Sequence record: NC_020851.1
DNA length: 64,000 nt
Direction: 5' to 3' (one strand)
The notes beneath the pieces are model-generated. The model was not told the origin of the DNA, made no database searches, and saw only the letters and a program-made list of their open reading frames with translations. Position 1 is the first letter of the stretch; each line of letters begins with the position of its first letter. The translations under genes were made by a program, and so were the position numbers. This document shows positions 24,498 through 53,142 of the stretch, in pieces.

Positions 24498-24592
24498 TGA
24501 GAAGTTATACCTACTTTATGTTTCCGGTAGAGTTGAGGCCAAGTGTCCCGAATAATCTCTGCCAACTTATCGGGTGTGGATGAACTAATCAC
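24494..24592 (-). CDS. Small hypothetical protein (32 aa)
   Basis: GTG start overlapping the talC stop; MISSSTPDKLAEIIRDTWPQLYRKHKVGITSH. Confidence 0.5.
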   Translation of the reverse strand: MISSSTPDKLAEIIRDTWPQLYRKHKVGITSH

Positions 24593-25254
24593 AGACCCTT
24601 GACAGAGTTCCAATCTTTCTGGAACTTCTCAAGACCTTGATCTGTTAGAACATGATTATACATTCCCCAAAATACATGAGGTGGAATTGTACAGATTTCT
24701 GCACCGGCATCAAAACATCTTCCTACTTGATGAACATCACGAACTGATGCGGCAATAATCTTAGTAGTACTAAAGTGTTGATTATAGAGACTAGCAATAG
24801 TCTGAACGAGTGCTACTCCAGAAAGAGAGTTATCGTTCATTCTCCCTACAAAAGGAGAAATATATGCGGCACCAGCACGACGTGCAAGAATTGCCTGTGC
24901 TGCAGAAAATATAAGAGTTACATTAACCTTTCTTCCCACAGAAGCAAGTGCTGTACATGCCTTCAATCCTTCTACAGTACAAGGAACTTTGATTGTGACA
25001 TTCCATAGTCCTTCAAATTCCATTGCCTGGTCAATCATTTCTTCGGCAGTATCGGCAACAACTTCTGCCGATACAGATTCGAATTGATTACTCATAGAAG
25101 AAATCTCTTTGATAACTTCTACAGGATCCATACCACTTGCTTTAATCAGAGTAGGATTGGTTGTAATACCCTCAATCATTCCTGTTGTGTTTGCTTCACT
25201 GATTGCATCAACATCAGCAGTGTCTAAAAATAGTTTCATTAGTTTGCAATTCAA
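24589..25254 (-). CDS. talC: Transaldolase (TalC family)
   Basis: LFLDTA, GITTNPTLI, SAEV (catalytic Glu), TIKVP (Schiff-base Lys), NVTLIFS, YISPFVGR. Likely start at MKLFLDT. Confidence 0.95.
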   Translation of the reverse strand: MNCKLMKLFLDTADVDAISEANTTGMIEGITTNPTLIKASGMDPVEVIKEISSMSNQFESVSAEVVADTAEEMIDQAMEFEGLWNVTIKVPCTVEGLKACTALASVGRKVNVTLIFSAAQAILARRAGAAYISPFVGRMNDNSLSGVALVQTIASLYNQHFSTTKIIAASVRDVHQVGRCFDAGAEICTIPPHVFWGMYNHVLTDQGLEKFQKDWNSVKGL

Positions 25255-26684: not shown

Positions 26685-27764
26685 TCAACCGATGGAAGGA
26701 GCAGTAAGTGCTACAGGAGTTGACTCAGCAGCAGCAAGATCCAATGGAAAATTATGGGCGTTCCTTTCGTGAATCACCTCTAATCCAAGACCAGCACGGT
26801 TGAGAACGTCTGCCCAAGTGTTGAGCACACGACCCTGTGAATCAATCACAGACTGATTGAAGTTGAAACCGTTGAGATTGAAAGCCATCGTGGATACACC
26901 AAGTGCGGTGAACCAGATGCCAACAACGGGCCATGCAGCAAGGAAGAAGTGCAAGGAACGTGAGTTGTTGAATGAAGCATATTGGAAGATCAAACGACCG
27001 AAGTAGCCATGTGCTGCGACGATGTTGTAGGTCTCTTCTTCTTGACCGAACTTATAACCATAGTTCTGTGACTCAGTTTCAGTCGTCTCACGGACGAGTG
27101 AAGATGTAACCAGACTTCCGTGCATAGCAGAGAAAAGAGATCCACCGAATACCCCAGCAACACCGAGCATGTGGAACGGGTGCATAAGGATATTGTGTTC
27201 TGCCTGGAATACAAGCATGTAGTTAAAAGTACCAGAGATACCAAGAGGCATAGCATCGGAGAAAGAACCTTGACCGAAAGGATAGACGAGGAATACTGCA
27301 CTCGCAGCAGCGACTGGAGCAGAATATGCTACACAGATCCATGGACGCATACCTAAACGATATGAGAGTTCCCACTCACGTCCCATATAAGCATAGATGC
27401 CGATAAGGAAGTGGAAGACTACCAGTTGGAAAGGACCACCGTTATACAACCACTCATCGAGTGATGCTGCTTCCCAGATTGGGTAGAAGTGGAGACCGAT
27501 TGCATTTGAACTTGGGACAACTGCACCAGAAATGATGTTGTTGCCATACATAAGTGAACCAGCAACGGGTTCACGAATACCGTCAATATCGACGGGTGGT
27601 GCTGCGATGAATGCGACAATGAAGCAGACAGTTGCTGCTAACAGTGTTGGGATCATCAGTACACCGAACCAACCAACATACAAACGGTTGTTAGTTGATG
27701 TCACCCACTCACAGAAATTCTGCCATGGGGATGTAGATTGTTGCCTTGAAAGAGTTGTAGCCAT
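26685..27764 (-). CDS. psbA: Photosystem II D1 protein (no intron)
   Basis: Uninterrupted 359-aa D1 with [37 protein letters not shown]. Confidence 0.99.
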
Positions 27765-33255: not shown

Positions 33256-33280
33256 AAATAAAGAGGGGTCAAGCCCCTCT
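33244..33280 (-). promoter_or_regulatory. Stem-loop sigma70 promoter cassette upstream of hli/petF
   Basis: agagggg-c-TTGACC-cctct hairpin; TTGACC-17-TATAAT. Confidence 0.7.
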
Positions 33281-33285
33281 CTGTG

Positions 33286-33996
33286 TTATTCACCACTTTT
33301 TTGTATAATGTATGCCCTACCTTGATCATCAAAACCATCAATATCAATATGAACTGGTTTCCCCGAAAAATTATCCACAGGAGCAATTAGTAAGTACGGA
33401 CCAGGAACTCTATCAGTTCTTACATCATAAGTTCTAAAGTTAGTAGGATGAAAATGAATCGTAACTACTTTCTTACCAGGATTACGACAAGTATATCCAA
33501 GTTCTCTCATATGATATGTAATCTTATTATCACAACCAGGTTTACCCATTGTATAATTCATACCATCACATGTTGGTATTGGAGTTTTAAAAATCCAAGA
33601 GTCTTGTGATGCTGAATTATCATATGGTTCAACCTCCCAGTTCTTACCATCTGTAGTAGATATTTCCCATCGACTCAATGCATAAAATTGTTTTTCCATA
33701 TTAGGACTCTTGAAGAATCGAAGAGTATCATCAAAAATAATATCTGCATTTGCAACTACACAAATTTGTTCTTTTAGACTCTCATTACAAAAATCAAAAA
33801 GATCTTTATATGATGGTCTTTCTTTTCTCACTATTCTATTAATTTTAGGAGAGTTGAAATTAAGTTCAGCATCATCTTCCATAAAAATATAAACCTTATC
33901 AATATATTCATTGGCAAGATTTTGATGCAGACAATACAAATACTCCCCGTTTCTCATATGATTACGAGAGTTAAAATATTCTATAATGAGATTCAT
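33286..33996 (-). CDS. Hypothetical glycosyltransferase-like protein
   Basis: VVANADIIFD (DxD-like), ALSRW, SQDSWIF, GKPGCDN; last gene of the glycan island. Confidence 0.55.
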   Translation of the reverse strand: MNLIIEYFNSRNHMRNGEYLYCLHQNLANEYIDKVYIFMEDDAELNFNSPKINRIVRKERPSYKDLFDFCNESLKEQICVVANADIIFDDTLRFFKSPNMEKQFYALSRWEISTTDGKNWEVEPYDNSASQDSWIFKTPIPTCDGMNYTMGKPGCDNKITYHMRELGYTCRNPGKKVVTIHFHPTNFRTYDVRTDRVPGPYLLIAPVDNFSGKPVHIDIDGFDDQGRAYIIQKSGE

Positions 33997-34886
33997 TGTT
34001 CAGAGATCCAATCCATTAAGTTTACTTTTGGTTCCCAACCAAATGTTCTTTTTAATTTATCATTTTTAGCAAGGGTAATTCTAGACTCACCAATTCTTGA
34101 GGGAATATTGACTTGATTGTCAGAAATTACATTAGCAATTTCATTAATAGAATAGTTTACACCATTACCCACATTATATAATTGACCATAATTCATATCA
34201 TGAACTTCGTTTGTTGCCGCAAGAATGTTTGCTTGTACAACATCAGATACGTGAGTAAAGTCTCTACGTTGCTCTCCATCACCAACAATAGTAAGTGCTT
34301 CTTCTGAATCACGTTGACGTAAAAAGATGCCTATTACAGGAGCATACTGACCCTTCAGAGGTTGCCTTTCCCCATATACATTAAAGTATCTGAGGAAAAC
34401 TGTTTTGAGTCCCCACAAGTCATTGTACATCTTACAAAGTTTTTCACCAGCAACCTTCGATACTGAATATGGATTTAAACAGTCATCATTCTGAAGTTCA
34501 TCATTAGGTGGTTCATTGAACCCATAACCTGATGAAGTAGAAGAGTAGATTACTTTCTTTACACCTACCTCTCGGGCACACTGAAGAACAGTAACCGTAC
34601 CTACACAGTTTACACTGACTGCCTCAATAGGATTTAAGATAGCAGGTTGAATTCTAGATTCGGCAGCAAGATGAAAAACATAGTCAACACCAGTCATAGA
34701 GTTTTTCAATAACTGGTAGTCTCTAATATCACCTTTTATATTGTAAGCTTTAGGATTCCTATAAAAATCTTCATTAGATTCTGCACTCTCATTATCATAG
34801 CAGACAACTTCATGACCCATTTCGAGAAGTTTGTCTACAATGTGAGACCCGATAAATCCTGCCCCACCTGTTACTAATGATTTCAT
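33993..34886 (-). CDS. NAD-dependent nucleotide-sugar epimerase/dehydratase
   Basis: VTGGAGFIGSH, YSSTSS, PYSVSK, LRYFNVYG, GDGEQRRDFTHVSDV. Confidence 0.92.
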   Translation of the reverse strand: MKSLVTGGAGFIGSHIVDKLLEMGHEVVCYDNESAESNEDFYRNPKAYNIKGDIRDYQLLKNSMTGVDYVFHLAAESRIQPAILNPIEAVSVNCVGTVTVLQCAREVGVKKVIYSSTSSGYGFNEPPNDELQNDDCLNPYSVSKVAGEKLCKMYNDLWGLKTVFLRYFNVYGERQPLKGQYAPVIGIFLRQRDSEEALTIVGDGEQRRDFTHVSDVVQANILAATNEVHDMNYGQLYNVGNGVNYSINEIANVISDNQVNIPSRIGESRITLAKNDKLKRTFGWEPKVNLMDWISEQ

Positions 34887-35011
34887 AAATCTCCTCCAGA
34901 AAAAATAACATCAACTTGAAACACATCACCCTTCCTTAAACTATCAGTGTCTTCATCCATCCAGATGTTTTCACCAATAATTTCATAATTGTCAAATCCA
35001 ATACTATTCAT
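34883..35011 (-). pseudogene. 42-aa ORF resembling the C-terminal tail of an FkbM-type methyltransferase
   Basis: MNSIGFDNYEIIGENIWMD...DVFQVDVIF; ATGA-coupled on both sides. Confidence 0.4.
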
Positions 35012-35958
35012 AAGTATACTTCCTTAAATTTTTGGCAGACTTTTTCTGGAGTGTAGTCTTGATAACAATTCCATTCTAAAGAATTTATTTCCTTCTTATC
35101 CAAATTTCTTAAGATATGAAGAATATCGGAATAATTTTCATAATAAATTCCTTTTTCTCCAAGTGTATCTATATGGTTTCTTTCTGGAGATTTTTCATAA
35201 GTAATCACAGGTTTATTTCTAATTGAGAACTCTGCACATGATAGACCAAATGATTCTCCAATATACCTAGCATGGAGCATAGCATCACATGTATTAATAA
35301 ATTTTACCTTAGTGTTCATATCAGAGGTGCCTGGTAAATGAATCACTCGTTCATGCTGAATAAAAGGTTCTGTAAACTGAAAAACAAACCAGATATCAGA
35401 TCTCTCAGACAATACTTGTTGTATTGCTTGTTTTACAAAAGGCAAATCAAAAGTTTCCCATCCACCATTTCTACCAAGAACTAAAGCATTCTTAGGAATA
35501 GATAACTCTTCTCTCATATCTTCCTCAATCTCAGGAAGATGCACTATGTAAGGAACATATGGGATAGTATAATTCGTTATTTTAGATAACCATTTAGATC
35601 CCATAGCATAGATATCACCATGAACCCAATTCGATTGCCAATTACCAGAAATAGCATTAACAAGATTTTTACTAACCGAAGATATAACTCCATCCGGATC
35701 TCCACCTTTTTCCATTAAGAAATAATCACATTTATTTTTATCCAAAATAGAATCTATCCCACTGACAGTATCATAAGAAAAAACCGAAAACTCTTTTTCA
35801 AATTTTTTCAAAGCATCGATACTATTAGCAGGATGAGTAGAGGGATACATGATAATTGGATCGACACCAAGGTAATATCTGGTCCAATATGCCCAATCAT
35901 AAATTGCTACAGTAGTCCCTCTCAAAGAGAGGGAATTGTCATGAAAAGCTATCTTCAT
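35008..35958 (-). CDS. GT-B fold glycosyltransferase-like protein
   Basis: RGTTVAIYD, GRNGGWETF, CDAMLHARYIGESFGLSCAEF. Confidence 0.75.
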   Translation of the reverse strand: MKIAFHDNSLSLRGTTVAIYDWAYWTRYYLGVDPIIMYPSTHPANSIDALKKFEKEFSVFSYDTVSGIDSILDKNKCDYFLMEKGGDPDGVISSVSKNLVNAISGNWQSNWVHGDIYAMGSKWLSKITNYTIPYVPYIVHLPEIEEDMREELSIPKNALVLGRNGGWETFDLPFVKQAIQQVLSERSDIWFVFQFTEPFIQHERVIHLPGTSDMNTKVKFINTCDAMLHARYIGESFGLSCAEFSIRNKPVITYEKSPERNHIDTLGEKGIYYENYSDILHILRNLDKKEINSLEWNCYQDYTPEKVCQKFKEVYL

Positions 35959-36764
35959 TTAGAAATTTTTTGTTCCAAATCTTTACGGGCAGTATCTCCA
36001 AGTCCATCCATTTGTTCAAAGAAGGCAAGAGATAGATTGATGTTGTCATCAGTAATTGTTGGACTAAAAGGACCAACTGGTTTGTAACCATACTCCATAT
36101 TCAGAATACGTTGGAAGTTATCTCCTTGGAAAATATCTGCCCAACACTTCTCACCGATGGTAGGAACTGTATCAAGATAGAATGAATAAATGATTTGTTC
36201 GGTGGTTCTCTGACTACCAGTAATAATTTCAGTATTTCCAAAATTGCACTGATTTACAAACGCAATAGCAGACTGTGCATCAATACCAACCTCTTCCATA
36301 CGACCAGGAATGATACTAATATATCCAACATCGTAAGTGCAACACTTCAGTGCAGTTGAAGAATCAGCAAGGCCAGTAACATTAGTAATTACATATTCAT
36401 TGAACTGATCGACATACTCTAATGCTTTCTGGTAGGGAGGAATCTTCATACCAACCTTACAGGTTCCTTGAGTTGCATCAGTAATGATCTTTGCATATTC
36501 AAGGATTATTTCGGGATCAAGATGAGAATAAGGTGCTTGAATATGAACTTCACCTTCATTGTCTCCACGAATATCTGCAACCAACTTACCCATGACTACA
36601 GCATGATCTAACCACTCATCAAGATGATACTTATCAATCTTACTAAATGCATTTGGATTTGTAGTTACACCACGAACCCATTTTGGATTGATATCAGATC
36701 CATACTTATCCATAGTAGATTTTATAAAATCCACATTTGCAGTATCAAAGAAAAAGTCTCTCAT
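35955..36764 (-). CDS. Divergent transaldolase/FSA-family class I aldolase
   Basis: FFFDTA, GVTTNP, GMKIPP (Schiff-base Lys), TNVT, YISIIPGR; Gln (HIQ) at the position of the transaldolase catalytic Glu. Confidence 0.8.
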   Translation of the reverse strand: MRDFFFDTANVDFIKSTMDKYGSDINPKWVRGVTTNPNAFSKIDKYHLDEWLDHAVVMGKLVADIRGDNEGEVHIQAPYSHLDPEIILEYAKIITDATQGTCKVGMKIPPYQKALEYVDQFNEYVITNVTGLADSSTALKCCTYDVGYISIIPGRMEEVGIDAQSAIAFVNQCNFGNTEIITGSQRTTEQIIYSFYLDTVPTIGEKCWADIFQGDNFQRILNMEYGYKPVGPFSPTITDDNINLSLAFFEQMDGLGDTARKDLEQKISK

Positions 36765-37117
36765 AATTGTTTCAAAGTTTCGTTAAAAGTTTTCCAGTTT
36801 TCTAGTCTGACTGCTTTATCGTCAACATAAAAATCTGCAACCGGTTTTCCAAAGTGAAGTTCATCATAAGGAATACCGTGTCTATCTAGCCATTCTACCA
36901 CAATGGGTGATTGATTGGCAATAATTTTACCCAGATTATTATTGTGGGTAACCATGTTTCTAGCAGTCATTATGATAATGTAATGACCTTCTTCTTTTAG
37001 TTTCTGAAGAGTCTCTATTGCACCAGGAATAGGTTTTACATCACTATAATGTTCACCTTCTTTTCTTATATAACAGAGAGTTCCGTCAAGATCAAAACAA
37101 AATTTATAATGTTTCAT
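36761..37117 (-). CDS. Small HAD phosphatase (capsule-biosynthesis type)
   Basis: FDLDGT, MTARNM, FGKPVADFYVDDKA. Confidence 0.88.
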   Translation of the reverse strand: MKHYKFCFDLDGTLCYIRKEGEHYSDVKPIPGAIETLQKLKEEGHYIIIMTARNMVTHNNNLGKIIANQSPIVVEWLDRHGIPYDELHFGKPVADFYVDDKAVRLENWKTFNETLKQL

Positions 37118-38069
37118 AAATTTGATTTAAGATATCCAATCCAGTAATGAACATTGCTTTCTGTCTCTCTAGACTATCATAATGTCTAGCACACATACCA
37201 ATAAAAATACATCCCTCAATCAATATTATCTTTTGATAATCAAAACCAAATCGATTAACCAGATCTACAAACTTCTTATTGATGTTTTGTTTGTTGGATT
37301 CATTCTCAAACTTAAGATCAAACTGATTGCCATTTACATTTACATCAAACTTATCGTAAATGAAATACTCATACCCACCATTGCATGAGTGAGAGATTTT
37401 TGCTAAGTCATAATAAGGATCACCATAATATTTGGTTTCACCAAACATGCCTCTAGGATCAATCATTTTAAGAATTAGATCATTTGTGATGGAATTTACT
37501 CCATACAAAATATTACTAAAACAGAGATCACCATGGATGAAATAGAACTTATCTTCAATTAATTTTGTTTCAATAAATTCTTTTATCTTTCCCCAAATAC
37601 TATCAAAAGATTTAAGTGTCTTTCCATTCAGAACAAATTCATCAACGTTCATCAGTTCTCTGAAGAAATCAAAGTTATACATCAGATTAACATATTCATT
37701 TTCAGTCTTATCAATGAACATCAAAAGAGAATCTCTCCGATTAGCATCGATTGATTGGGAATTCTTATAACAGTTAATATATCCTAAAAGAAAATCAAAT
37801 GCATTTTCCCAAAAGGTATCATCATAATCAGATGATACCATTACATTTCCAAGATTATTATAAGCGTAATATTCCAACTCCAAAGAGTATGGATTTTTTA
37901 AATTACAATCAATTAGTCTTGGAAAAAATACTTTTAGATTACTAGGGAGATCCAAATAATAATTTGCTTCTCCCTTTAATCTATCTTCCTCACTTGTTTT
38001 AATAACACTAGCTTTGGTTTGAGGATTCAGAGTAAATCTATTATATGCTCTAGTCGTAAATTCCATCAA
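37104..38069 (-). CDS. APH/choline-kinase-fold sugar kinase-like protein
   Basis: HGDLCFSNIL, MIDPRG, GDPYYDLAKISHS. Confidence 0.82.
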   Translation of the reverse strand: MMEFTTRAYNRFTLNPQTKASVIKTSEEDRLKGEANYYLDLPSNLKVFFPRLIDCNLKNPYSLELEYYAYNNLGNVMVSSDYDDTFWENAFDFLLGYINCYKNSQSIDANRRDSLLMFIDKTENEYVNLMYNFDFFRELMNVDEFVLNGKTLKSFDSIWGKIKEFIETKLIEDKFYFIHGDLCFSNILYGVNSITNDLILKMIDPRGMFGETKYYGDPYYDLAKISHSCNGGYEYFIYDKFDVNVNGNQFDLKFENESNKQNINKKFVDLVNRFGFDYQKIILIEGCIFIGMCARHYDSLERQKAMFITGLDILNQIYETL

Positions 38070-39493
38070 ACTTTTGCCATAGACTCAAGTGTTGCCTCAT
38101 CAACAGCAGACAATGGAACACTACCTTCAGAATCTTTATTGTAGACTTCATCATGAAGTTCTTCAATAGAAACAAATGTGAGGTTATAAATGTCAGCAAA
38201 TTGCTTAAGATCATCTCCCTTGATCATTTTGCCATACTCATCCATAATCTCAATGATCACCCCAACTTGCTTCATGCCAGCAAGTTTCAAAATTTCCACA
38301 CAACCCTCAGTGTGTCCACGTCTTTCACTCAGAAGTCCTGGACGTGCACGAAGTGGGAACAAGTGACCTGGTTGAGCAAGAGAATCTGGTTTAGAAGAAT
38401 CAGACAGGAAAGTGGAGATAGTTGCTACACGATCATTAACAGACATGCCAGTTGTTGCACCTTCAACAGCATCAATACTGGTGGCAAAGGGAGTTCCAAA
38501 CTCATCACATCCGTTCGAATGCATCATTGGAATACCAAACTGATCCAGTTTTTCCTGTGTGCAGGGAAGGCACATCAAACCACGAGCATGACGCATAGCA
38601 AACAGAAGGTTTTCTGCAGTTGCTTTTTCTGCTGCTAGAACAATATCACCCTCAAACTCACGGTCATAATCATCAACCATGACAATAGGTTTACCATTAC
38701 GAAGATCTTCAACTGCTTGCATTACATTTTGACGTTTAATGTGAAGCATAATATCATTTGGACTACCGAGAGAAACAAACTCATCATCTGCCATATGATA
38801 ATTCATAACTTTTTTGCCTTCAGAAATTAAATAGTTGTAAGTGAGAGATACATACTTTTCCTTAACACAAGACATTTTGCCAGTAGACCATCCAGCGTCC
38901 GTATCATCAGACATTAACTGCTGAGAACTTTCAATAAAATAATTTCCTTCTTTCCAATAGAAAATTCCATTCAGTGCTAGAGGAGAAATTGCAACTTTTT
39001 CGGCAAGACGTGTTGCATATCCATTATCATTGAGTTGAATATGACTGTAAGGACTGTCGGATCCCACTTCAATACCTAAATGATCGTAAGTACTCACAAC
39101 TCCATCAGGATCATTATCTCTAATAAAACTGAGGAACTTATTAGAGTTCCAAGGAGTATACTGATCACAATTGGTGACAACTAGTGGTTCAGAGGTATCA
39201 ATGTTTGCTTTTTGAATTCCCAACAAACAAGTTTCTGCTTGACCAAGTGTTGACTTTCCAATGTCAACGATTTCCAAATTCAGATAGTATTTTTCCTTAA
39301 TACTATTGAGGATATTGATATAGTCTTGTTCTAATCCATTAACAATAACAAAATATTTGCCCGTAAGTTTCAAAGAAGAAAGAGCCCACTCAATCAAAGG
39401 TTTACCTTTGAACTTCACAAATGGTTTGGGATCGATATATCCATTATTTTTAAACCTGGTCCCAAGACCGGCAATTGGAAATAAAATGTTCAT
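38066..39493 (-). CDS. ribB: Fusion of a sugar nucleotidyltransferase and 3,4-dihydroxy-2-butanone-4-phosphate synthase (RibB)
   Basis: N-terminus ILFPIAGLGTRF...PKPF, TLGQAETC, NCDQ, LGSP; C-terminus DDYDREFEGDI, GLMCLP, TTGMSVNDR, PGHLFPL, RRGHTEG, IIEIM. Confidence 0.88.
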   Translation of the reverse strand: MNILFPIAGLGTRFKNNGYIDPKPFVKFKGKPLIEWALSSLKLTGKYFVIVNGLEQDYINILNSIKEKYYLNLEIVDIGKSTLGQAETCLLGIQKANIDTSEPLVVTNCDQYTPWNSNKFLSFIRDNDPDGVVSTYDHLGIEVGSDSPYSHIQLNDNGYATRLAEKVAISPLALNGIFYWKEGNYFIESSQQLMSDDTDAGWSTGKMSCVKEKYVSLTYNYLISEGKKVMNYHMADDEFVSLGSPNDIMLHIKRQNVMQAVEDLRNGKPIVMVDDYDREFEGDIVLAAEKATAENLLFAMRHARGLMCLPCTQEKLDQFGIPMMHSNGCDEFGTPFATSIDAVEGATTGMSVNDRVATISTFLSDSSKPDSLAQPGHLFPLRARPGLLSERRGHTEGCVEILKLAGMKQVGVIIEIMDEYGKMIKGDDLKQFADIYNLTFVSIEELHDEVYNKDSEGSVPLSAVDEATLESMAKV

Positions 39494-39506
39494 GTTGACG
39501 TAGCAA

Positions 39507-40178
39507 TTAAATTTCTGAGGTCGTTTTGTTTCTTAAAAATACCCAACCACCATTTGAGGCAGATGGATTTACACATACCATATTCATCTTTTCACGATAT
39601 TCTCTCAGACTATGAAAAAATAATCTGTGATGGCACAAAGGTATCTTATCACTTTGTAGATAGTTTGTCAAATTGTCATATATTTCACAGATCTTTAAAA
39701 TTTTATCTGCTGAAGCACAGAACCATTTGGCATCTAGATGTGTATTTAACCATTCAATACCTTTGACGTATGAAAAATAAAGTTCATCTTTATCCATTTT
39801 ATACTCTTTTATTGATTCATCACAAATACATCCAGCATCTGTTCTGGTGACAATAACAAAATCATATTCATCATCAAACTTTTTTATAATTTCACCAACT
39901 TTTTTCAATGAGTATATTGGTGAAATTGTTTGAAATACACTTTTTGTTATCTTAGATAAATCTGTCTGTTCCGGTATATCGCAAAAATCTTCCTTTTGTT
40001 TTTCTATAATTACTTCCTTGAAATTAAATTCAGAAAGCAATTCATCTTTATCTAAATCAGGGTCCTCCCAAAAATGAGCATAAAAATCTACATCACATCC
40101 ATCATAAAAATTTTCAAAGTTATCTTTCCATAGATCATAGAATCTAGGATATCCAAAAAAACAAATAGCAATTTTCAT
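39507..40178 (-). CDS. Putative glycosyltransferase-like protein (paralogue 1 of 3)
   Basis: MKIAICFFGYPR...YDFVIVTRTD; same pattern as 40182 and 42010. Confidence 0.6.
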   Translation of the reverse strand: MKIAICFFGYPRFYDLWKDNFENFYDGCDVDFYAHFWEDPDLDKDELLSEFNFKEVIIEKQKEDFCDIPEQTDLSKITKSVFQTISPIYSLKKVGEIIKKFDDEYDFVIVTRTDAGCICDESIKEYKMDKDELYFSYVKGIEWLNTHLDAKWFCASADKILKICEIYDNLTNYLQSDKIPLCHHRLFFHSLREYREKMNMVCVNPSASNGGWVFLRNKTTSEI

Positions 40179-40181
40179 AAT

Positions 40182-40910
40182 TTACCAAGAATGTCTGTCA
40201 GGGTCCATTACAAACCAACCAGATCTATTGGGTTGTTTTGCAATGGGATCTATCCCACCATTAACCGGGATTCTTATTAATCCCATTCTATGTATATGAA
40301 TTCCATTATAGGTTTCTGGGTGAAATGCATTTCCTTCATCAAAATATTGATCAACATAATCAATACAAGATGAATACTTATTCATAGTTTCAGAATTACA
40401 TAGAACAGAAGTATCGGATACACCAAGCTTGTTTACAGATTTAAAATCCCATGCAGTTGGAATTAAAATATTCTCATCAATCTTTGCTCTTTCCAATTCG
40501 GTATCTGTTATTGAGGTGTGCCACAAAGCATCAGCTCTAGCCTTTAAACATAAGTCATAAGTAAAATCATTTTCTTTCTCATACTCCAGTTTCAACTCGT
40601 TCACCTTCTTTAGATTATACATTCCAGACAACCAAGTATGAGGTGTTGTTTCTGGTCTTTTTCTCGCATTAAACTTTTCATCATTTGAATGAACTTCCTT
40701 TCTAACTTCTTCAGTATACTCTCTGAGAATATACTTCTTAGGATTCCAGAGTTCTCTAACTTTCTGATCACAATAATCCATGCCCATTTTATTAGGATGT
40801 CCTGAGAAAAAAATATCAGGAGATAGTTTATCAAGAACTACCTCCTTTAGAGAATCATAATCATTTACAAAACTGTCTAATCTACCAATTATAAGTAAAG
40901 CTATTTTCAT
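40182..40910 (-). CDS. Putative glycosyltransferase-like protein (paralogue 2 of 3)
   Basis: MKIALLIIGRLDSF...YDLCLKARAD...HPET. Confidence 0.6.
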   Translation of the reverse strand: MKIALLIIGRLDSFVNDYDSLKEVVLDKLSPDIFFSGHPNKMGMDYCDQKVRELWNPKKYILREYTEEVRKEVHSNDEKFNARKRPETTPHTWLSGMYNLKKVNELKLEYEKENDFTYDLCLKARADALWHTSITDTELERAKIDENILIPTAWDFKSVNKLGVSDTSVLCNSETMNKYSSCIDYVDQYFDEGNAFHPETYNGIHIHRMGLIRIPVNGGIDPIAKQPNRSGWFVMDPDRHSW

Positions 40911-42009
40911 ACAAATCTTGTTGTTGAATTTATATTTAATATCTGATCCTTTATTTCTTCAGTATATACTCCTGCACGAAGAATTACAGTTGGACTATCT
41001 ATATCTCTCAAAACTTCTGGTGATTGAATTGTCAGATCAGTTCCATATAATCTTTTGCCCTGCTTCTTTGTATCATTATCTAATATGGATACAATTAAAT
41101 TTTCATCTATTCCAAAATTCAGAAGGGTTTGAGAAAACACATGGGCACCAAAAAGGTAAACATTATCTTCTATATCATCAAGTATATTAGATACATCACT
41201 TTTTAATTTGTAAATATAATCTAAAAACAAATCTTTTGAATATTCAAAGTTTACATCAACTTTGCCAATGTCACTAGATTTAACTGCTTTTACAAAAATA
41301 GAATGAGTATCAACTACTTTTTTGTCGATAGAAAATCCTGCTCTTGCTAACACATGTTCCAAAACAAACTCATCAAGATAGTAAGTGTGTTCGAAATTTA
41401 TAGTGTTTGTATATCCCCGTTTCAACCAATGCCTCATATTTGGTATTGAGATAAACTGAACACCATCATCAGTAAGATCCTCAAATATTTTTTTAAGAAA
41501 CTCTATGGGATTGTACGCATGTTCAAAAACATGAGAGTGAATAATACATTTATATTTCTCATCAAAAGATTGTGTTTCATAGAATCCTCTAACATATTTC
41601 AATCTAGAATCAGAGGATTCCTGATGTGATGGTTCAATGATTTCATAACTGAACTGAGAATCTAGAGTAGAAAAGTTTTTCCACAAACTTCCAGATGCTC
41701 CACCTATTTCAAGATACCGATCAATGTTATCAGAGTTTTCGATAATAAAATCAAAAAATCTTTTGTGATGTTGTTTCCATATCTTTCCAACACTTCCAGG
41801 AGTATGAGAATTTTCATACAGGATATTAGGATCAATTAAAGTCTTCAGTTGAACTAATCCATTCTCAGAAACACCCCAATCTTGATCAAAAAAGATATCG
41901 TCTTCTACAGGTGTATCAACGCATCCCATAAAGACAGGAAACTTCTCTAAGGTGTATAATTTTTTACGGATGTTTTATTATCTAAAATACAATTGTTTCT
42001 TTCAGTCAT
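40907..42009 (-). CDS. SAM-dependent sugar (C-)methyltransferase-like protein, frameshifted near the N-terminus
   Basis: LEIGGASG, HSHVFEH, SIPN, FEHTYY, FGAH...ILDND..KQGKRLYGT. Coupled ATG at 42009 joins LYTLEKFPVFMGC only if the A6 at 41960-41965 is read as A7. Confidence 0.75.
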
Positions 42010-42801
42010 TTATGAATACCAGTTTTTAAAAAATTCGTAATCACTATAGTTTTCAAGTCTAAAACAGTCTCCAAGAACTCTATGAAAACTTTGAATCCTA
42101 ATTTGATTCTCAATGCATTGTGCGTACATCATTCTACATGCATCATATTTACCATAATTAATATAATGATTTGTTTCTGCTAGTTTGCCATAATCTTCCC
42201 AACAATTACAGAGAATATCCATTGTTTTGGAATTTCCCAACAAGAACATAGAGTAAATTCTATTGGGAGAATATGTTTTTCCAGTGTTAATATGATAACA
42301 CACATTCTCCAGATCATCAAAATATTCTTCAATATCAGTATGTAAATGTAAAAAGTCAGGACGACTTCTTATTACAGCATCATATGTAAATAAATTATCA
42401 CTTTCATATTTTCTCTTCATCTGAGCAGCAAGATGCATTGTATAGAATTCTGGACTACTGCTTGCCACCAAACCATACTCTTTATTATTATACCATCTAT
42501 GCAATAAAGATTTTATTTCATCGGAGCAAAGATTATCAAGATACTCATCATAATCTGATATCACATAGTCCTTTACATTTACAAACTTTTCAATATCACT
42601 AGTGGTTATAACATCATCAACGTCATCTTTGTATAATTCAGGATTCTGAGATCTAACACTCCACATAGAAACACCACGATTTTTCCATGTAGATATGAAG
42701 ACATCACAGTTAAATTTTTCACTCAATCTATTAGTGTTCTCTAGAACCTTTGGATGATCAAAGGTCCTCATTTGTCCACAAAGTAGTAGTGCTGTTCTCA
42801 T
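42010..42801 (-). CDS. Putative glycosyltransferase-like protein (paralogue 3 of 3)
   Basis: MRTALLLCGQMRTF...YDAVIRSRPD. Confidence 0.6.
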   Translation of the reverse strand: MRTALLLCGQMRTFDHPKVLENTNRLSEKFNCDVFISTWKNRGVSMWSVRSQNPELYKDDVDDVITTSDIEKFVNVKDYVISDYDEYLDNLCSDEIKSLLHRWYNNKEYGLVASSSPEFYTMHLAAQMKRKYESDNLFTYDAVIRSRPDFLHLHTDIEEYFDDLENVCYHINTGKTYSPNRIYSMFLLGNSKTMDILCNCWEDYGKLAETNHYINYGKYDACRMMYAQCIENQIRIQSFHRVLGDCFRLENYSDYEFFKNWYS

Positions 42802-42809
42802 TTTAGATT

Positions 42810-43537
42810 TTAAAATTTGTTTCTAGTAGCCCATATTGGATAATCTTTTCCTGCAATAGTCCAGGCAGGTGCCCAATATGTTTCGTCAGGAATACAATAG
42901 AATTTATACTTCTTACTCATGAGGGAAAAAACTGATTGATCGTGCCTATGATCTTTAAACTCTTTATGGTTCTGTTCTTGTGATGGAGCATCATTAATGT
43001 AAAAATGATCATTTTCTATAGAGATATTTTTTATCTCTTGAATGATATTTCTATTCTCTTGAGTATTCTTAAGAATGAATGTAGTTGCACATCTCTGTCC
43101 AGTGTTCAAGTGATCAAGGGTTTCTGGAAATATTTTTTATATGTATCCATCTTAGTATATGATCTTTCCAAATGTCCAAGATCAAAACACAATGAACCAT
43201 ACTCTGATGTCAGGTTACAATATTCTTTAAATCTTTTAACTCCATCATTATTAAAAGTGCATCCAATATCAGCATAACATATCAAATCATCATCCGGGAC
43301 TAACTCCATAATTTTAGAAATTAAAAAAGACTTCCACATCCAATGCCCATAACCTTTGGTTGATGATAAAAATTTTTCATAAGGAGTTATTTCAGGACAA
43401 AAATCAAATATATTATTTTCCGAAAATAAATTTATAGTAGAAAACTGACCAAAATTATTAGCACCTTGTAAAACTCTCTGATGTGCTCTATGAAAAATAT
43501 TAAATGGTGCACCAAAAGAAACTAAATGAATATTCAT
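42810..43537 (-). CDS. Putative glycosyltransferase-like protein split by a frameshift
   Basis: YGHWMWK...YADIGC in the upstream frame joins KIFPETLDHLNTGQ...HRHDQSVFS if the A6 at 43133-43138 is A7. Confidence 0.7.
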
Positions 43538-44390
43538 GATAAAGATTTAAACAAAAAGTCTTTGATATTATCCAAAGATACTTTCTCAGTAAAAATTGGT
43601 TCTTTTGCCATTTTATTATACAAATTATCTGATTGATCCAATTCAATAATTTTTTGAATTAATTCTTCATCAGACATATCAACTGCATTAATAAAGCAAT
43701 CTGGATTAAAATCTTCACCTATACTTTTATCTCCATAATAAATTGGAATATTTCCTGCAACTTTTCCGTGGAGTAACTTCTCCGTGTGATATCCAGGAGT
43801 TACAGAGTTCTCATAACACAATGAAAACTTATAATTAGAAATCAAATCTAACTTATATTTTTCACCGTCTGGCAAATAGTAATTAGGATTTGCTTTCCCA
43901 AAAACATCTATCTGTTTGTAGTTAGAACATATATTTTGAATTGCATTAATTCTAGATTCAATTTGTTTACCATAAACTATGGAACAAAATTTATCTTTCT
44001 TCTTTTGTGTAAATTCATTATCATTGTATAGATATGATTCTGGAATCAACCAATCAGGATTATCATAACTATTAACTTCAAACCAATCAATGTAAAGATA
44101 CCACAAAGGAAGTCTAAAATTTTTACCTTCATGCTCATCAACATCAAAAGTTAAAGAGTAATCACACCTCTTGAAATTGGGTCTTACATTTTCACCCGTA
44201 AAAAATATTTTTTACAATCTTTGTATCGACCACTCTCATTCCCAAATAAACTGAAGAACATTACATCAGCATCTTCAGGTTCTACAACCTCAACATCCTC
44301 AAACAAATCACGAATGATGTGAATAAAGAAATTGTTATTTGGATCAAATGCTTTTGGATATTGCCAGAAGTCAGAGAATGTTATTTTCAT
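43534..44390 (-). CDS. Alpha-1,3/4-fucosyltransferase (GT10-like) split by a frameshift
   Basis: Adding one A at 44208-44213 gives KKIFFTGENVRPNF...DYSLTFD...RLPLW, continuous with KFCS...YKFSLCYENSVTPGYHTEKL. Confidence 0.82.
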
Positions 44391-45076
44391 GATTGAATAA
44401 AAGATTTATCTAAATTTAAGTGAGATGCTTGTTGTAGTGATGGTTCAGTCCAACCAACTTTTAAATTTTCTTTAATAATAATTTCATTTAATTTGAAATC
44501 TATTGGCCAGTTTATTGGATAAAGATTCTGTATTATCTTCTTAGCAGCATCCAGAGAAAACATCATTGCATGAGTACATCTTGTCAATTGATTTTCTCCA
44601 TAATGAACAAGTCTATTCTCTTTAATATAAGGAGATGTAAAACCAAAACAACTACCCAACATTACACAATCTAATTTTGGATTATAATTATCAAACTCTT
44701 CATAACAGACATTTAAATATTCTTCAAAGTTATCCGGAAGCATAATATCATCTTCCAAAATAACTATTGTTTCATATTCATTTTCAATCTGTTTTTCAAA
44801 ACAATATTGATGTTTCAAATATAATGAAAGTTCTGGAATAGAAACTCTTTTACCAGCATTCTCATACAATGTATACTGATTCTGCTGAACACCAGGAACA
44901 TTAGGATTAATGAATAAGTCTTTCGTTCCTATTACTTCATCATAACTTTCAACAATTTCTTCTGGAGAGAAATTTTCAACCCATTCCACTTCAATATTTT
45001 TAGATAAAAAGAAATTAATTAGATATTCCTTTCTATGTGTCAGTGGTGAATGATGACAAACAAAAATTTTATTCAT
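44387..45076 (-). CDS. GT25-like glycosyltransferase
   Basis: SLYLKH, IVILEDD, RCTHAMMFS...PID. Confidence 0.75.
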   Translation of the reverse strand: MNKIFVCHHSPLTHRKEYLINFFLSKNIEVEWVENFSPEEIVESYDEVIGTKDLFINPNVPGVQQNQYTLYENAGKRVSIPELSLYLKHQYCFEKQIENEYETIVILEDDIMLPDNFEEYLNVCYEEFDNYNPKLDCVMLGSCFGFTSPYIKENRLVHYGENQLTRCTHAMMFSLDAAKKIIQNLYPINWPIDFKLNEIIIKENLKVGWTEPSLQQASHLNLDKSFIQS

Positions 45077-45930
45077 TACACTCTTTTAATAATATTCTCA
45101 AATACACCTTGAAGTGAAAAGTAATCTTGATAGAGTTCCTTACCTTTCTTTAACATCTCATTGTATGTATCGTCAGAAATACTCTTTAAAATATCATATG
45201 CATTTCCGATATTATCATCATCAATTATAACACAGAACTCTTCCCAATCCAATTCGTCAGACCAAGGAAGTGCATGGTCATCAGAAATATAAACAGGAAC
45301 AGTATTCAATTGGAAGGATTCATAGAGTCTGAAACTTGTCGTTCCATATCCCCTGGGACATAGAGAGAACTTAGAAGCAGACATAACATCAAGGAAGTTA
45401 TTCAGTTTTTCTTCTCCAACATTGATATCCCAGTTTCCTGCTTTGACGAGACAATCATCCTTTCCACGGAATGCTTTCATCATATCAGTTCTCACCCAAT
45501 AAGTATTGGATCCAATAAAAGAAGCAAAGTATTTTTGTTCTTGTTTAGGAGTTTCCGGAATAGAAGAACATACCAATGGAATGGGAATTACATTTCCTTT
45601 TTTACGATTACCTCCTGCACAAAAGATCATTGTATCTTCAGGAAAATCTTCAAATGGACCATCATCTTGTTGACAAATAGTAAAGTAAGATCCATCTGAA
45701 CTTAGTGTATCATACATAAGGTTTTGCAGATCAGGATATGGTTGTCCTGCCCAAATCTTATTACAAAAAATATTTGACCAGAAGATATCAATATATTCTC
45801 TTTCTGGTTTATCTTCTAATTGTTGATAATGACTATAAAAATATTCTTCTAGATATTCTCCTTGATGATAGGGAGGATATGTTGGTGTAAGAGACTTTGG
45901 TCTTAGATAATCTTCCTTCAAATAAACCAC
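45076..45930 (-). CDS. Exostosin (GT47)-like glycosyltransferase
   Basis: SKFSLCPRGYGTTSFRLYESFQLNTVPVYISD...LPW. Confidence 0.8.
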   Translation of the reverse strand: MVYLKEDYLRPKSLTPTYPPYHQGEYLEEYFYSHYQQLEDKPEREYIDIFWSNIFCNKIWAGQPYPDLQNLMYDTLSSDGSYFTICQQDDGPFEDFPEDTMIFCAGGNRKKGNVIPIPLVCSSIPETPKQEQKYFASFIGSNTYWVRTDMMKAFRGKDDCLVKAGNWDINVGEEKLNNFLDVMSASKFSLCPRGYGTTSFRLYESFQLNTVPVYISDDHALPWSDELDWEEFCVIIDDDNIGNAYDILKSISDDTYNEMLKKGKELYQDYFSLQGVFENIIKRV

Positions 45931-46589
45931 AGTCCTTCCTCCTTAAACTTATTGATTTTGGTTTCTACACCAACCATCCAATTATTATGAACGATCATAG
46001 CGTTTTCTTTTTTACCTTGTTGATAATACACATTACCATTAGGAAATAAATCCTCAGATAGTAATGCTATATTATCATTATATTTTGTAAGTGCAATACG
46101 ATTCATGATTAGTTGATCATCATCAGAATCATCCACACCACATTCTTCTACTAACTGACGACATTCGAGTGTCTCATTAAATACCATAAAGCCAGTGCAG
46201 ATTGTAGACCCAGGAGCATCAGTTTGAAATAGTACTTCTTCATGACCAGTCAGAATCTCAACAGGATTTTCTTTGAATACAATATCAGTATCAACCCACA
46301 TCAGATTAGGATATTCTTTGTGAACCTGATTAATGATCTTCCACTTGTGACGAACCACATTTCTAAATCCACTATTACTATCAAAAGTCCAATCCTGATA
46401 TTCTTTTAAGTTACTATCCATATAAAGAAAAGCACCTTTATAACCGTCAAGAATAAAAGACTTATAAACGTCTTCATCCATACATGCAATAATAAAGTCA
46501 TCCATATCAATGCCCACTTTTTCAGCAGACCTTAACATATTCAGACAAATATCATGACATCCAGAATTTAAGAATGTAAGAAATTTCAT
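45918..46589 (-). CDS. Nucleotide-diphospho-sugar transferase (GT77-like)
   Basis: LMWVDTDIVF, ICTGFM, DDQLIMN, FPNG, VHNNW...K. Confidence 0.75.
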   Translation of the reverse strand: MKFLTFLNSGCHDICLNMLRSAEKVGIDMDDFIIACMDEDVYKSFILDGYKGAFLYMDSNLKEYQDWTFDSNSGFRNVVRHKWKIINQVHKEYPNLMWVDTDIVFKENPVEILTGHEEVLFQTDAPGSTICTGFMVFNETLECRQLVEECGVDDSDDDQLIMNRIALTKYNDNIALLSEDLFPNGNVYYQQGKKENAMIVHNNWMVGVETKINKFKEEGLWFI

Positions 46590-47536
46590 CGATCTTTATA
46601 CCATTCGTAAGTTGATTTAATACCCTCTTTCAAATCAATCTTTGGTTCCCATCCAAGAGATTTAATTTTAGTTACGCCCAAAAGTTTTCTTGGTGTTCCA
46701 TTTGGTTTAGAAGTGTCCCATGTTGTTTCACCAGGATATCCCACAATACCAGAAATCATATTTGAAAGTTCTTTGATTGTAATGTCTTCACCGGTTCCCA
46801 CATTGATAATATCAGGATCATTATAATCCCTCATACAAGTATAACATGCTTCAGCAAGATCATCAACATGAAGAAATTCTCTCCTTGCCGAACCGTCACC
46901 CCATAGTTCTACATCTGGCCACCAAGGACCTCCCATATCAACACTATAACCATCAGTTGTAGCATGATGATATTTTGCAATCATCGCGGGAAGAACATGC
47001 GAACTTTCTAGGTCAAAATTATCATTTGGACCATATAGGTTTGTAGGCATCAAAGAGATAGCATTAAATCCATACTGCTGATGGTATGCCTGACACATCT
47101 TGATACCAGCAATCTTTGCAATAGCATAAGAATCATTACTAGGTTCAAGAGGACCACTCATTAGATATTCTTCCCTAATAGGTTGTTCACATAATTTTGG
47201 ATAAATGCAGGAAGAACCAAGAAATAAAAGTTTCTTAACACCAAACTTACGTGCAGAATGAATGATGTTTGATTGAATCATCAAATTATCATAGATGAAG
47301 TGTCCGGGATAATCCTTATTAGCACCAATACCACCCACCTTTGCAGCAGCAAGATAAACGTACTCAGGTTCATTGATTTGAAAAAACCTTTCAACATCTT
47401 CCTGACGACGTAAATCCCAATGAGAAGATGGTGATGAAAGAATATTAGTGTATCCTTTCCAATGAAGCATACGGACAATTGCTGATCCTACAAGTCCAGT
47501 ATTACCAGCAACATAAATTCGACTCTGACTATTCAT
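46586..47536 (-). CDS. fcl: GDP-L-fucose synthase
   Basis: [56 protein letters not shown]; start at MNSQSRIY. Confidence 0.95.
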
Positions 47537-48524
47537 GGATACACATGTCCTCAACCAATTGTTTAAAAGAAGTTTTAGGTTCCCAACCCAATTTTTTCTT
47601 TGCCTTAGAGGCATCACCTAATAAGGTCTCTACTTCAGCAGGACGGAAATATTTAGAGTCAATTCTGATAACCGTTTTACCATCAGAATCAATACCAACT
47701 TCATCAAGACCAGAACCTTCCCATCTAATATTCATATCAAAATAAGGTGCAGATTCCTCAACAAACTGACGGACAGAATATTGATTTCCTGTGGCAATAA
47801 CAAAATCATCAGGTTCTTCTTGTTGAAGCATTAACCACATAGCCTCGACATAATCTCTGGCATGTCCCCAGTCACGAAGTGCATCAAGATTTCCTAGATA
47901 TAAACAGTCTTGCTTACCTTCAGAGATTGCTTTTAATGCTCTTGTAATCTTACGAGTTACAAAAGTTTCACCACGTCTTGGAGATTCATGATTAAAAAGA
48001 ATACCACTACAGGCATACATTCCGTATGATTCACGATAGTTCTTTACTATCCAGTACCCATAGAGTTTTGCAACACCATAAGGAGAACGTGGATAGAAAG
48101 GTGTGGTCTCTGTCTGTGGAGTCTCTTGCACCTTACCATAAAGTTCACTGGTGGATGCTTGATAGATACGAACCCTATCTTCCATCTCAAGCAAACGGAC
48201 TGCCTCAAGCACTCTCAGGGTGCCTATGGCATCTGTCTGACCAGTATACTCGGGCATCTCAAACGAAACCTTTACATGACTCTGTGCCCCAAGATTATAA
48301 ATCTCATCTGGTTGAACCTGCTGAATAACCCTCACTAAATTTGTAGAGTCTGTTAAGTCTCCATAATGCAATTTTAATTGATCATAAATGTGATCAATTC
48401 TATGTGTATTAATTAAAGAAGCCCGACGGACAATACCATGAACCTCATACCCCTTTTCAAGAAGAAGTTCTGCTAAGTATGAACCATCTTGTCCTGTAAT
48501 ACCAGTGATTAAAGCAACTTTCAT
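47529..48524 (-). CDS. gmd: GDP-mannose 4,6-dehydratase
   Basis: [59 protein letters not shown]. Confidence 0.97.
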
Positions 48525-48553
48525 AAACTATAATATCGTAATTACATTATACC

Positions 48554-48579
48554 AAAAAGGAGAGTTTATGCAACTCTCC
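48554..48579 (-). terminator. Intrinsic terminator between the wcaG-like RNA and gmd
   Basis: ggagagtt-gcata-aactctcc followed by T5. Confidence 0.8.
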
Positions 48580-48582
48580 TCA

Positions 48583-49862: not shown

Positions 49863-50333
49863 TCATATGACATTTCCTGGTGATAAAGATTGAAAAATTT
49901 TAGAACAAGTATCAATAGCAACATGTGCTCCATATACCCCAGAGAAAATATATAAGATACCTAACTTAGAACAGTACAGTTCCAGTTCCTGACATTTTCT
50001 TATATCTGTGGTACTGTAATCAATAATAATATCACCCTCCTCAAGTAAAGGTAGCAACTCATCAAGTGTGTCTTCTGTCTTTTGCTCTGGAAGTGTAATC
50101 TGAAAGATGCCAGGAACTTTTCCGGCACTAGTGTATCTAAGACCATCAGATTTAACTGCCTGAACAAGATACTCTAATGAAGTTACACATCCACTAATAT
50201 ATCCTGCTTCATATTGTCCACAGGCATTCTCATAACTACTGCTACTGTAACCCCAAACTTCCATTCCCTTTTCAATCATACGACGGGACATACCTTCACC
50301 AGTACGACCTAAACCAATCATTCCAACTTTCAT
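49863..50333 (-). CDS. gnd: Truncated, degenerate 6-phosphogluconate dehydrogenase (NAD(P)-binding domain only)
   Basis: MKVGMIGLGRTGEGMSRR, PGIFQ, LLPLLEEGDIIID; the GNS motif and whole catalytic C-terminal domain are missing. Confidence 0.75.
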   Translation of the reverse strand: MKVGMIGLGRTGEGMSRRMIEKGMEVWGYSSSSYENACGQYEAGYISGCVTSLEYLVQAVKSDGLRYTSAGKVPGIFQITLPEQKTEDTLDELLPLLEEGDIIIDYSTTDIRKCQELELYCSKLGILYIFSGVYGAHVAIDTCSKIFQSLSPGNVI

Positions 50334-52995: not shown

Positions 52996-53066
52996 AGCGG
53001 AATACCAGAATCGAACTGGTGACGAAAGGTTGGAAACCTTTAGTTTTGCCTCTAAACTAATTCCGC
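52996..53066 (-). tRNA. tRNA-Gly(TCC)
   Basis: Cloverleaf; anticodon loop TTTCCAA. Confidence 0.92.
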
Positions 53067-53141: not shown

Positions 53142-53142
53142 G

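Follow-up and report, generated by a model that had tools for sequence, protein, structure and literature searches.

A phage gene module joining a RibB-type synthase domain and a divergent aldolase to sugar-activating enzymes: a candidate route to a non-standard nucleotide sugar in Synechococcus phage S-SKS1

Introduction

In the Afh route of HY126, AfhE converts arabinofuranose 5-phosphate to the 1,5-bisphosphate, AfhF removes the 5-phosphate, and the N-terminal domain of AfhE then yields UDP-arabinofuranose (UDP-Araf) (PMC13326640). The equivalent cassette of phage RB69 comprises an arabinose-5-phosphate isomerase (API), a nucleotidyltransferase (NTase, or NT), a kinase and a small HAD phosphatase. 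Butyrivibrio proteins have been noted in which the NT-kinase carries an additional fusion to the SIS isomerase (PMC6024577). Here, we analyzed a 64-kb sequence, hereafter termed the window, that matches the beginning of the genome of Synechococcus phage S-SKS1 (NC_020851 / HQ633071; host WH7803) at 100% identity and in the same coordinates. In this window, four overlapping genes encode a comparable set of activating enzymes together with a RibB domain and a divergent member of the transaldolase (TAL)/FSA superfamily. We propose, with a probability of roughly 0.6, that this module is a single biosynthetic unit that would convert ribulose 5-phosphate (Ru5P) into a nucleotide-activated, non-standard sugar for the glycosyltransferases (GTs) of the surrounding glycan island.

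Results

The four genes and their recurrence

The interval 35955-39493 of the minus strand was filled exactly by four open reading frames (ORFs), and adjacent ORFs overlapped by 1-4, 14 and 4 nt in the order of transcription. The original prediction, made from the letters of this DNA, had listed an NTase-RibB fusion, an APH-fold kinase, a HAD protein and a divergent TAL, and all of them are present (39493-35955, minus strand), as follows.

38066..39493, minus strand: NTase-RibB fusion, 475 aa; sugar-1-phosphate nucleotidyltransferase plus 3,4-dihydroxy-2-butanone-4-phosphate synthase
39493-38744, minus strand: NTase domain of the fusion (aa 1-250), with an AGLGTRF motif (PF12804, 1e-5; PF00483, 2e-4)
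38731-38150, minus strand: RibB domain of the fusion (aa 255-448; PF00926, 5e-65)
37104..38069, minus strand: sugar kinase assigned to the APH/choline-kinase fold, 321 aa; the RefSeq start is the ATG at 38066
36761..37117, minus strand: small cap-less HAD phosphatase, 118 aa, with all four motifs (DLDGT, T51, K91 and DD)
35955..36764, minus strand: divergent class-I aldolase of the TAL/FSA superfamily, 269 aa (PF00923, TAL_FSA, 1.9e-12)

The combination of these domains recurs widely in viral contigs. A scan of IMG/VR with the aldolase retrieved 47 viral contig loci, and profile searches found RibB, the kinase and the NTase adjacent to the aldolase in all of them (47/47), with the HAD present in nearly all. 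By aldolase sequence, 54 loci fell into 30 clusters at 90%, 21 at 70% and 8 at 50% identity. The reverse scan of viral contigs, conducted with RibB motifs, yielded 53 loci, 52 of which were examined; the kinase and the aldolase accompanied RibB in 49 of the 52, and all five domains were found in 45. Among the three exceptions, one locus was cut by the contig end (L186), the second had its kinase ~5 kb off (L154), and the third (L191, 39% identity) carried RibB alone. Co-occurrence, which the original prediction had put forward as a check on the module, was thus found from both the aldolase and the RibB sides. Three divergent relatives of the fusion (38-47% identity) were also found to keep the S-SKS1 order of fusion, kinase (~320 aa), HAD (~120 aa) and TAL-like protein (~270 aa), on contigs that are phage-like (RNR, RecA, MazG and ClpB).

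Neither the order of the genes nor their fusions are fixed. With KIN standing for the kinase, we found NT-RibB/KIN/HAD/TAL as in S-SKS1 (type A), NT/RibB/KIN/HAD/TAL (type B), RibB/KIN/NT/HAD/TAL (type C) and RibB/KIN/NT-HAD fusion/TAL (type D). The fusions were of four kinds, namely NT-RibB in S-SKS1, RibB-NT'-kinase in L060, NT-HAD in L058, and HAD-aldolase in the metagenomic protein P0366. A shuffled order combined with four different fusions is a classical signature of enzymes that act in one pathway. The association is not a matter of chance, and the five activities are functionally linked.

Type-C modules in eight viral loci (for example, L037 2174-3700, L039, L042, L046 and L054) were adjoined by a RuBisCO large-subunit-like protein (397-409 aa; PF00016, 6e-36), with a small cupin and a methyltransferase alongside.

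The NTase-RibB fusion

A collection of 5.8 billion proteins contained 351 relatives of the fusion at E<=1e-10, and the matches were of full length and went down to 38% identity among the 120 listed. The NTase domain matched Pfam NTP_transf_3 and NTP_transferase weakly; its top NCBIfam match was MurU (5e-7), its top PDB match was 4evw (3e-10), and its similarity to HddC reached merely an E value of 0.004. The RibB domain passed the cut-off of the TIGR00506 equivalog (188.1 against 177.45) and aligned over the full length with Yersinia RibB (3h07, E of 1e-47), one of the enterobacterial RibB structures. The motifs DRExEGD, PGHLFPL and RxGHTE were kept in 12 diverse members. From this equivalog-level match, we infer that the RibB domain would make L-3,4-dihydroxy-2-butanone 4-phosphate (DHBP).

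The original prediction held that no isomerase gene is present and that RibB sits in its place. Consistent with this, a profile of the RB69 API found no SIS isomerase in the window or in the other loci then searched (60 sequences in all), except for the RB69 gene itself, and RibB stands at the position of the RB69 isomerase. A tie of this RibB clade to riboflavin genes, which had been named as a finding that would count against the module, was not seen: the window annotation and the annotated recurrent neighbour families contained no rib gene, a negative drawn from annotation, with no profile search for ribA, ribH or ribE run.

The kinase and the small HAD phosphatase

The kinase had no Pfam match, and a sequence search of the PDB was empty. 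The protein carries the motifs HGDLCFSN and IDPRG, and HGD181xxxxN186 and D204 were invariant among 15 members. Its AlphaFold (AF2) model had a pLDDT of 91, and Foldseek retrieved APH(3'), APH(2'') and choline/ethanolamine kinases; the fold assignment is one made solely by modelling. By sequence, the kinase family was matched with RB69 gp52, a homologue of the C-terminal domain of AfhE, at an hhalign probability of 98.9% (E of 1e-17), and its tblastn matches included the C-terminal half of NTase-kinase fusions from numerous phages, RB69 among them. We propose that the kinase would phosphorylate the anomeric hydroxyl group of a sugar omega-phosphate.

The small HAD matched TIGR01689 ('capsule biosynthesis phosphatase') at 1e-26, which is below the cut-off of that family, as well as HAD-IIIA and phrog_1238. 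It shared 30% identity with RB69 gp51, the AfhF homologue (E of 8e-14), and we propose that it would remove the terminal phosphate. The label 'phosphoheptose isomerase' borne by this protein is wrong and has spread via RefSeq and PHROG 1238; RB69 gp51 (L003 5579-5965) is a homologue mislabelled in the same way.

The divergent aldolase

The aldolase had at least 556 protein clusters at 90% identity in its family, and among 1.84 billion representatives it was related to 118 clusters at E<=1e-30 and 447 at E<=1e-3. It scored 30 bits against TIGR00875, for which the cut-off is 246, and its best PDB relatives were small transaldolases (1e-10), so that its profile barely extends to canonical TALs. 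The aldolase forms a compact, well-separated subfamily.

Among 15 diverse members, D7, T34, T35, N36, Q76, K107, N128, T130, S150, I152, R155, S184 and R186 were invariant. Accordingly, the Schiff-base Lys107, the N-terminal Asp7, the TTNP motif and the phosphate site formed by Arg155, Ser184 and Arg186 are retained, and Lys, Asp, TTNP, NVT and Arg/Ser/Arg are common to the module aldolase and T. acidophilum TAL, B. subtilis TAL and E. coli FSA. In contrast, Q76 aligned with the catalytic Glu (E60) of T. acidophilum transaldolase (6yrt), so that the Glu of transaldolase (EC 2.2.1.2; E96 in TalB, E60 in TacTAL) is Gln in the module. FSA shares this Gln (Gln59), but the position of its catalytic Tyr131, which aligns with a Phe in T. 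acidophilum transaldolase, is occupied by the invariant I152. Mutation of Glu to Gln (E60Q/E96Q) reportedly lowers transaldolase turnover strongly, and FSA-like aldolase activity is said to require the Tyr. The module protein further differs from small TalC/FSA proteins in extra insertions and in a conserved C-terminal extension of ~50 aa.

We considered whether the TAL-like gene is the cyanophage talC and rejected this identification, as a canonical talC sits at 24589-25254. Because the phage has a normal talC apart from the module, the second TAL-like gene is something other than the customary pentose-phosphate auxiliary gene. The talC product of S-SKS1 and S-CAM9 TalC retain the Glu and SPFVGR; with Gln76 and Ile152, the module aldolase is therefore neither the usual talC product nor a typical transaldolase or FSA.

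Bacterial homologues

Scanning genomes with the kinase profile revealed at least 591 homologues in bacteria. The typical layout across the 80 loci retrieved was an NT'-kinase fusion of ~550 aa, the same small HAD (TIGR01689-like) and a second NTase, located among GT2, GT4, Wzy, WavE and TagF-like genes of O-antigen/capsule loci; the TagF-like transferases adjoined the operon in a few loci. The operon (loci L061-L139) was distributed over Bacteroidota, Planctomycetota, Myxococcota, Legionella, Gastranaerophilales, Clostridia and others, and none of its proteins bears an NCBIfam name. These are the closest cellular homologues of the S-SKS1 kinase (28-39% identity over the full length), HAD and NTase. 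In contrast to the phage module, 78 of the 80 bacterial loci lack RibB and the aldolase. The remaining two were found in metagenome-assembled genomes (MAGs) of Planctomycetota (L060) and Saprospiraceae (L107). In L060 (60% GC), RibB, NT' and KIN are fused into one protein, with NT, HAD and TAL after it, and the flanks carry a split transketolase, a methyltransferase, a zinc alcohol dehydrogenase and an RmlD-like gene. As RibB and the aldolase occur in just two of the 80, the full module is mainly, though not exclusively, viral.

No cellular relative came from scanning genomes for the aldolase motif S[IVL]IPGRMEE, but the pattern had given a false negative: the kinase scan found L060, in which the aldolase reads SIIAGRMEE. 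We therefore dropped the notion of a module confined to phages.

The glycan island around the module

The module lies in an island with the following features, listed together with the canonical talC of the window.

33260..48581, minus strand: whole glycan island, ~15 kb, with ~20 co-directional genes
42010..42801, minus strand: F4 family paralogue 3, 263 aa; clusters and aligns with the other two F4 paralogues
40907..41929, minus strand: C-methyltransferase-like protein, 340 aa (Pfam Methyltransf_23 and Methyltransf_14)
40182..40910, minus strand: F4 family paralogue 2, 242 aa; GT-A fold by model, with a weak DUF7796 match
39507..40178, minus strand: F4 family paralogue 1, 223 aa; GT-A-fold glycosyltransferase-like (phrog_13607)
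35008..35958, minus strand: GT1-like (GT-B) protein, 316 aa (Glycos_transf_1, 1.6e-4, below the cut-off)
33993..34886, minus strand: GalE-like NAD-dependent epimerase or reductase, 297 aa; short-chain dehydrogenase/reductase (SDR; PF01370, 3e-57)
24589..25254, minus strand: canonical cyanophage talC, 51% identity to S-CAM9 TalC

Terminator-like hairpins were found at both ends of the island (48581-48557 and 33282-33260), and its GC content was low (0.30-0.34 across 40-46 kb). Glycosyltransferases had been predicted on both flanks of the module. Upstream, there are indeed the three GT-A-fold F4 paralogues, along with the C-methyltransferase-like gene; downstream, the weak GT1-like gene, whose start overlaps the aldolase stop by 4 nt, is followed by the GalE-like SDR gene. 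Further island products are Gmd (GDP-mannose 4,6-dehydratase), an Fcl-like SDR, and GT77-, GT47-, GT25- and GT10-like proteins.

The F4 family, which is unannotated and has an invariant YDxVIxxRxD motif, flanked the module in 51 of 57 loci in one to three copies each. The AF2 model of paralogue 2 (pLDDT 83) retrieved BoGT6a, XXYLT1, glycogenin and GTA/GTB in Foldseek with E values of ~1e-6, which points to a generic retaining GT-A fold and nothing more specific. Judging from the modelled fold, the F4 proteins are likely the best candidates for acceptor-side transferases of the module product. We compared F4 with WavE because the latter accompanies the bacterial kinase/HAD/NTase operon; a relationship between the two was rejected (hhalign probability of 3%). 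The C-methyltransferase-like family (TylC3-like) stood beside the module in 15 loci, the GT1-like family was found in 18, and SDR genes accompanied the module in 42.

Two island genes appeared to be split when judged against intact homologues on related contigs. In the GT10 fucosyltransferase-like gene (43585-44396), the N-terminus at 44396-44202 lies in frame -3 and the remainder at 44223-43585 in frame -2, and an F10-family gene (42885-43444) is divided into 43444-43139 and 43124-42885 by an apparent frameshift. They could be pseudogenes, programmed frameshifts or sequencing errors.

Elsewhere in the window, two genes annotated as 'photosystem II D1' (23387-24442 and 26685-27764) flank talC, an HNH endonuclease gene and an endonuclease VII gene, and could reflect a duplication of psbA or the break-up of a psbA region by homing endonucleases. 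In the S-SKS1 papers, gnd and tal are the only auxiliary genes listed. The gene at 49863-50333, annotated as '6-phosphogluconate dehydrogenase', encodes 156 aa with the NAD-binding N-terminal domain only (PF03446); either it has been truncated or it is no full gnd. Downstream of a phosphate-transporter gene resembling pstS, the minus strand carries a cluster of ten tRNA genes at 52996-54077 (Gly, Lys, Thr, Ser, Ile, Ser, Ala, Pro, Asn and Arg).

Discussion

A proposed pathway from ribulose 5-phosphate

In the pathway that we propose, RibB would convert Ru5P to DHBP and formate, and the TAL/FSA-like aldolase would couple DHBP with a second carbonyl partner via a Schiff base on Lys107. The product would be a cyclisable sugar phosphate, branched-chain or deoxy, that keeps the methyl group of DHBP. 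Subsequently, the APH-fold kinase would phosphorylate the anomeric hydroxyl group, the small HAD would take off the distal phosphate, and the NTase would form the nucleoside diphosphate (NDP)-sugar. These last three steps we infer from the homology to AfhE and AfhF; the coupling of DHBP by the aldolase is the weakest step of the proposal. DHBP is the methyl-ketone analogue of glyceraldehyde 3-phosphate (G3P), with the opposite configuration at the carbinol carbon. As the aldolase keeps a G3P-type phosphate site and the Ser that binds the C1 hydroxyl group, we favour DHBP as a methyl-ketone electrophile in the conserved G3P/phosphate pocket, where the attack of a dihydroxyacetone- or glycolaldehyde-type donor would give a C-methyl-branched hexulose 6-phosphate or pentose 5-phosphate. 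The pentose 5-phosphate would be a close analogue of the Afh substrate. Alternatively, DHBP might act as a nucleophile through its C3, echoing the final enediol in the RibB reaction, and give a 3-C-branched 1-deoxyketose. Our best guess for the product is a sugar built from DHBP that is methyl-bearing, branched or deoxy.

Several points weigh against this proposal. All evidence on the module is genomic, and the structure of the product is not derivable from sequence. Since the aldolase lacks both the Glu of TAL and the Tyr of FSA, it may catalyse something other than an aldol reaction. There is no aldehyde group in DHBP, and we know of no precedent in the TAL/FSA family for its use in an aldol reaction as a ketone electrophile or a tertiary nucleophile. 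If the product of the aldolase is a ketose, phosphorylation at the anomeric position and activation with NDP would be unusual. Finally, some module types contain two NTases, the roles of which are unexplained.

The other readings of the locus differ in what they make of RibB and the aldolase. The cassette might yield NDP-D-arabinofuranose, with an FSA-like aldolase supplying arabinose 5-phosphate from glycolaldehyde and G3P, a known reaction of FSA, and with RibB unrelated. The homology of the kinase and HAD to the AfhE/AfhF-type proteins of RB69 and the FSA-like Gln of the aldolase agree with this idea, but it leaves unexplained why RibB is present in essentially every copy, fused to NTase or to NT'-kinase; moreover, the catalytic Tyr of FSA is absent, and the bacterial kinase/HAD/NTase operons manage without RibB or the aldolase. 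We consider NDP-D-arabinofuranose quite unlikely as the product. An acyclic C4 unit (DHBP, reduced or rearranged), activated with NDP and passed on as a phospho-alcohol, much as happens with CDP-glycerol or CDP-ribitol, would account for the direct fusion of NTase to RibB, and the aldolase-like protein, in which the usual acid-base residues are absent, would then be an isomerase or lyase acting on a DHBP Schiff base. The resemblance of the NTase and kinase to LicC- and LicA-type enzymes and the TagF-like transferases near the bacterial operon in a few loci point in the same direction. However, direct activation of DHBP would leave the kinase and the phosphatase superfluous, the co-conserved transferases have the GT-A fold instead of the TagF or LicD fold, and the distal phosphate site of the aldolase suits a longer ligand. 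We regard the acyclic unit as an unlikely product as well.

The pathway proposed above might also serve a different acceptor, with the NDP-sugar used to decorate not a glycan but the phage DNA, like the arabinose of RB69. The nearest characterised homologues do act in DNA hypermodification. On the other hand, the module sits among Gmd/Fcl-like enzymes, GT10-, GT25-, GT47- and GT77-like proteins, methyltransferases and GT-A paralogues, the window annotation holds no modified-base synthase (thymidylate-synthase or dCMP-hydroxymethylase homologue), and the bacterial homologues are located in Wzy/GT2/GT4 loci, so we assign a low probability to DNA as the target. Very unlikely, in our view, is that RibB and the TAL-like gene are ordinary auxiliary genes, serving riboflavin/FMN supply and pentose-phosphate flux, beside an unrelated sugar module. 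Such a view could appeal to the canonical appearance of the RibB domain, to the talC known in cyanophages and to the flavoenzyme employed in RB69-type DNA modification. It is difficult to reconcile with the four kinds of fusion and the near-obligate adjacency in both search directions, with a window annotation that includes no other rib gene and places the canonical talC elsewhere in the phage, with a Glu-to-Gln change expected to cripple transaldolase turnover (as reported for the E60Q/E96Q mutants), and with a module in a Planctomycetota MAG contig of 60% GC beside polysaccharide genes.

Implications

Full-text searches of the literature gave no description that connects nucleotide-sugar enzymes, or a cassette of this kind, with RibB or DHBP synthase. 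The activation logic is already known; the front end of RibB plus aldolase and the aldolase subfamily are new, and both the chemistry and the sugar stand a substantial chance of being new as well. The specific claim that DHBP is the C4 building block for a new class-I aldolase subfamily leading to a new branched or methyl-bearing sugar nucleotide, which would take DHBP synthase beyond riboflavin synthesis for the first time, is tentative, and we put it a little short of an even chance.

If the proposed pathway from Ru5P through DHBP to a sugar is true, it would constitute a new entry into nucleotide-sugar metabolism, probably to a new monosaccharide, and a second biological role for RibB. The new aldolase subfamily might then possess biocatalytic value for tertiary-alcohol or deoxy sugars, and the cassette would have spread through marine and freshwater phages and a few bacteria. 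As the cassette is common in environmental phages, it could explain part of the effects of the large cyanophage 'LPS/glycan islands' (LPS, lipopolysaccharide) on host surfaces or virions. The analysis also brings to notice a widespread, unnamed bacterial kinase/HAD/NTase operon and corrects the 'phosphoheptose isomerase' misannotation.

Comparison with known pathways

The original prediction had likened the module to GDP-heptose synthesis (GmhA/HddA/GmhB/HddC) and the GDP-octose route of lincomycin (LmbR/N/P/K/O). The logic of kinase, HAD phosphatase and NTase is indeed the same, but these routes are analogies and not homologues: the kinases of the two routes (HddA and LmbP) are GHMP-type, in contrast to the APH fold of the module kinase, and the true relatives are AfhE/AfhF and the bacterial operon. 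Both routes also need an isomerase (GmhA or LmbN), and the module has no SIS protein. LmbR resembles the module aldolase in being a TAL-family builder of the carbon skeleton, but the latter lacks the transaldolase Glu, and therefore an LmbR-type transaldolase step is not established.

Compared with the RibB of riboflavin synthesis, the module domain passes the equivalog cut-off and matches enterobacterial structures at ~1e-47; it differs in being fused or adjacent to nucleotide-sugar enzymes. The NTase clade of S-SKS1 takes part in another pairing. Other cyanophage islands combine it with a HAD_2 (beta-phosphoglucomutase-like) domain, fused in S-CAM9 gp067 (L002 5341-6726) and adjacent in L004 12278-13598, and this is a different route to an NDP-sugar, composed of a mutase plus an NTase.

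The closest resemblance is to the Afh route (HY126 AfhE/AfhF; RB69 gp55, gp52:53 and gp51; DLP3 gp81-83), which starts from Ru5P, as we propose for the module. The APH-fold kinase and the small HAD are homologous between the two, the order of NTase, kinase and HAD is the same, and the logic is alike, namely from sugar omega-phosphate to 1,omega-bisphosphate, sugar 1-phosphate and NDP-sugar (PMC13326640). The NTases belong to different clades, and the NT profile of the module has no match to the NT domain of RB69. In AfhE, the NTase is fused N-terminally to the kinase, whereas the S-SKS1 kinase stands alone and the NTase is fused to RibB. The setting of the Afh genes is that of DNA modification (arabinosyl-5-hydroxycytosine DNA), where UDP-Araf serves DNA arabinosyltransferases, in contrast to the glycan island of S-SKS1. 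In place of the SIS arabinose-5-phosphate isomerase of the Afh route, the module has RibB and the TAL/FSA-like aldolase. Because the RB69 cassette is homologous, RibB would occupy the slot of the first, Ru5P-consuming enzyme.

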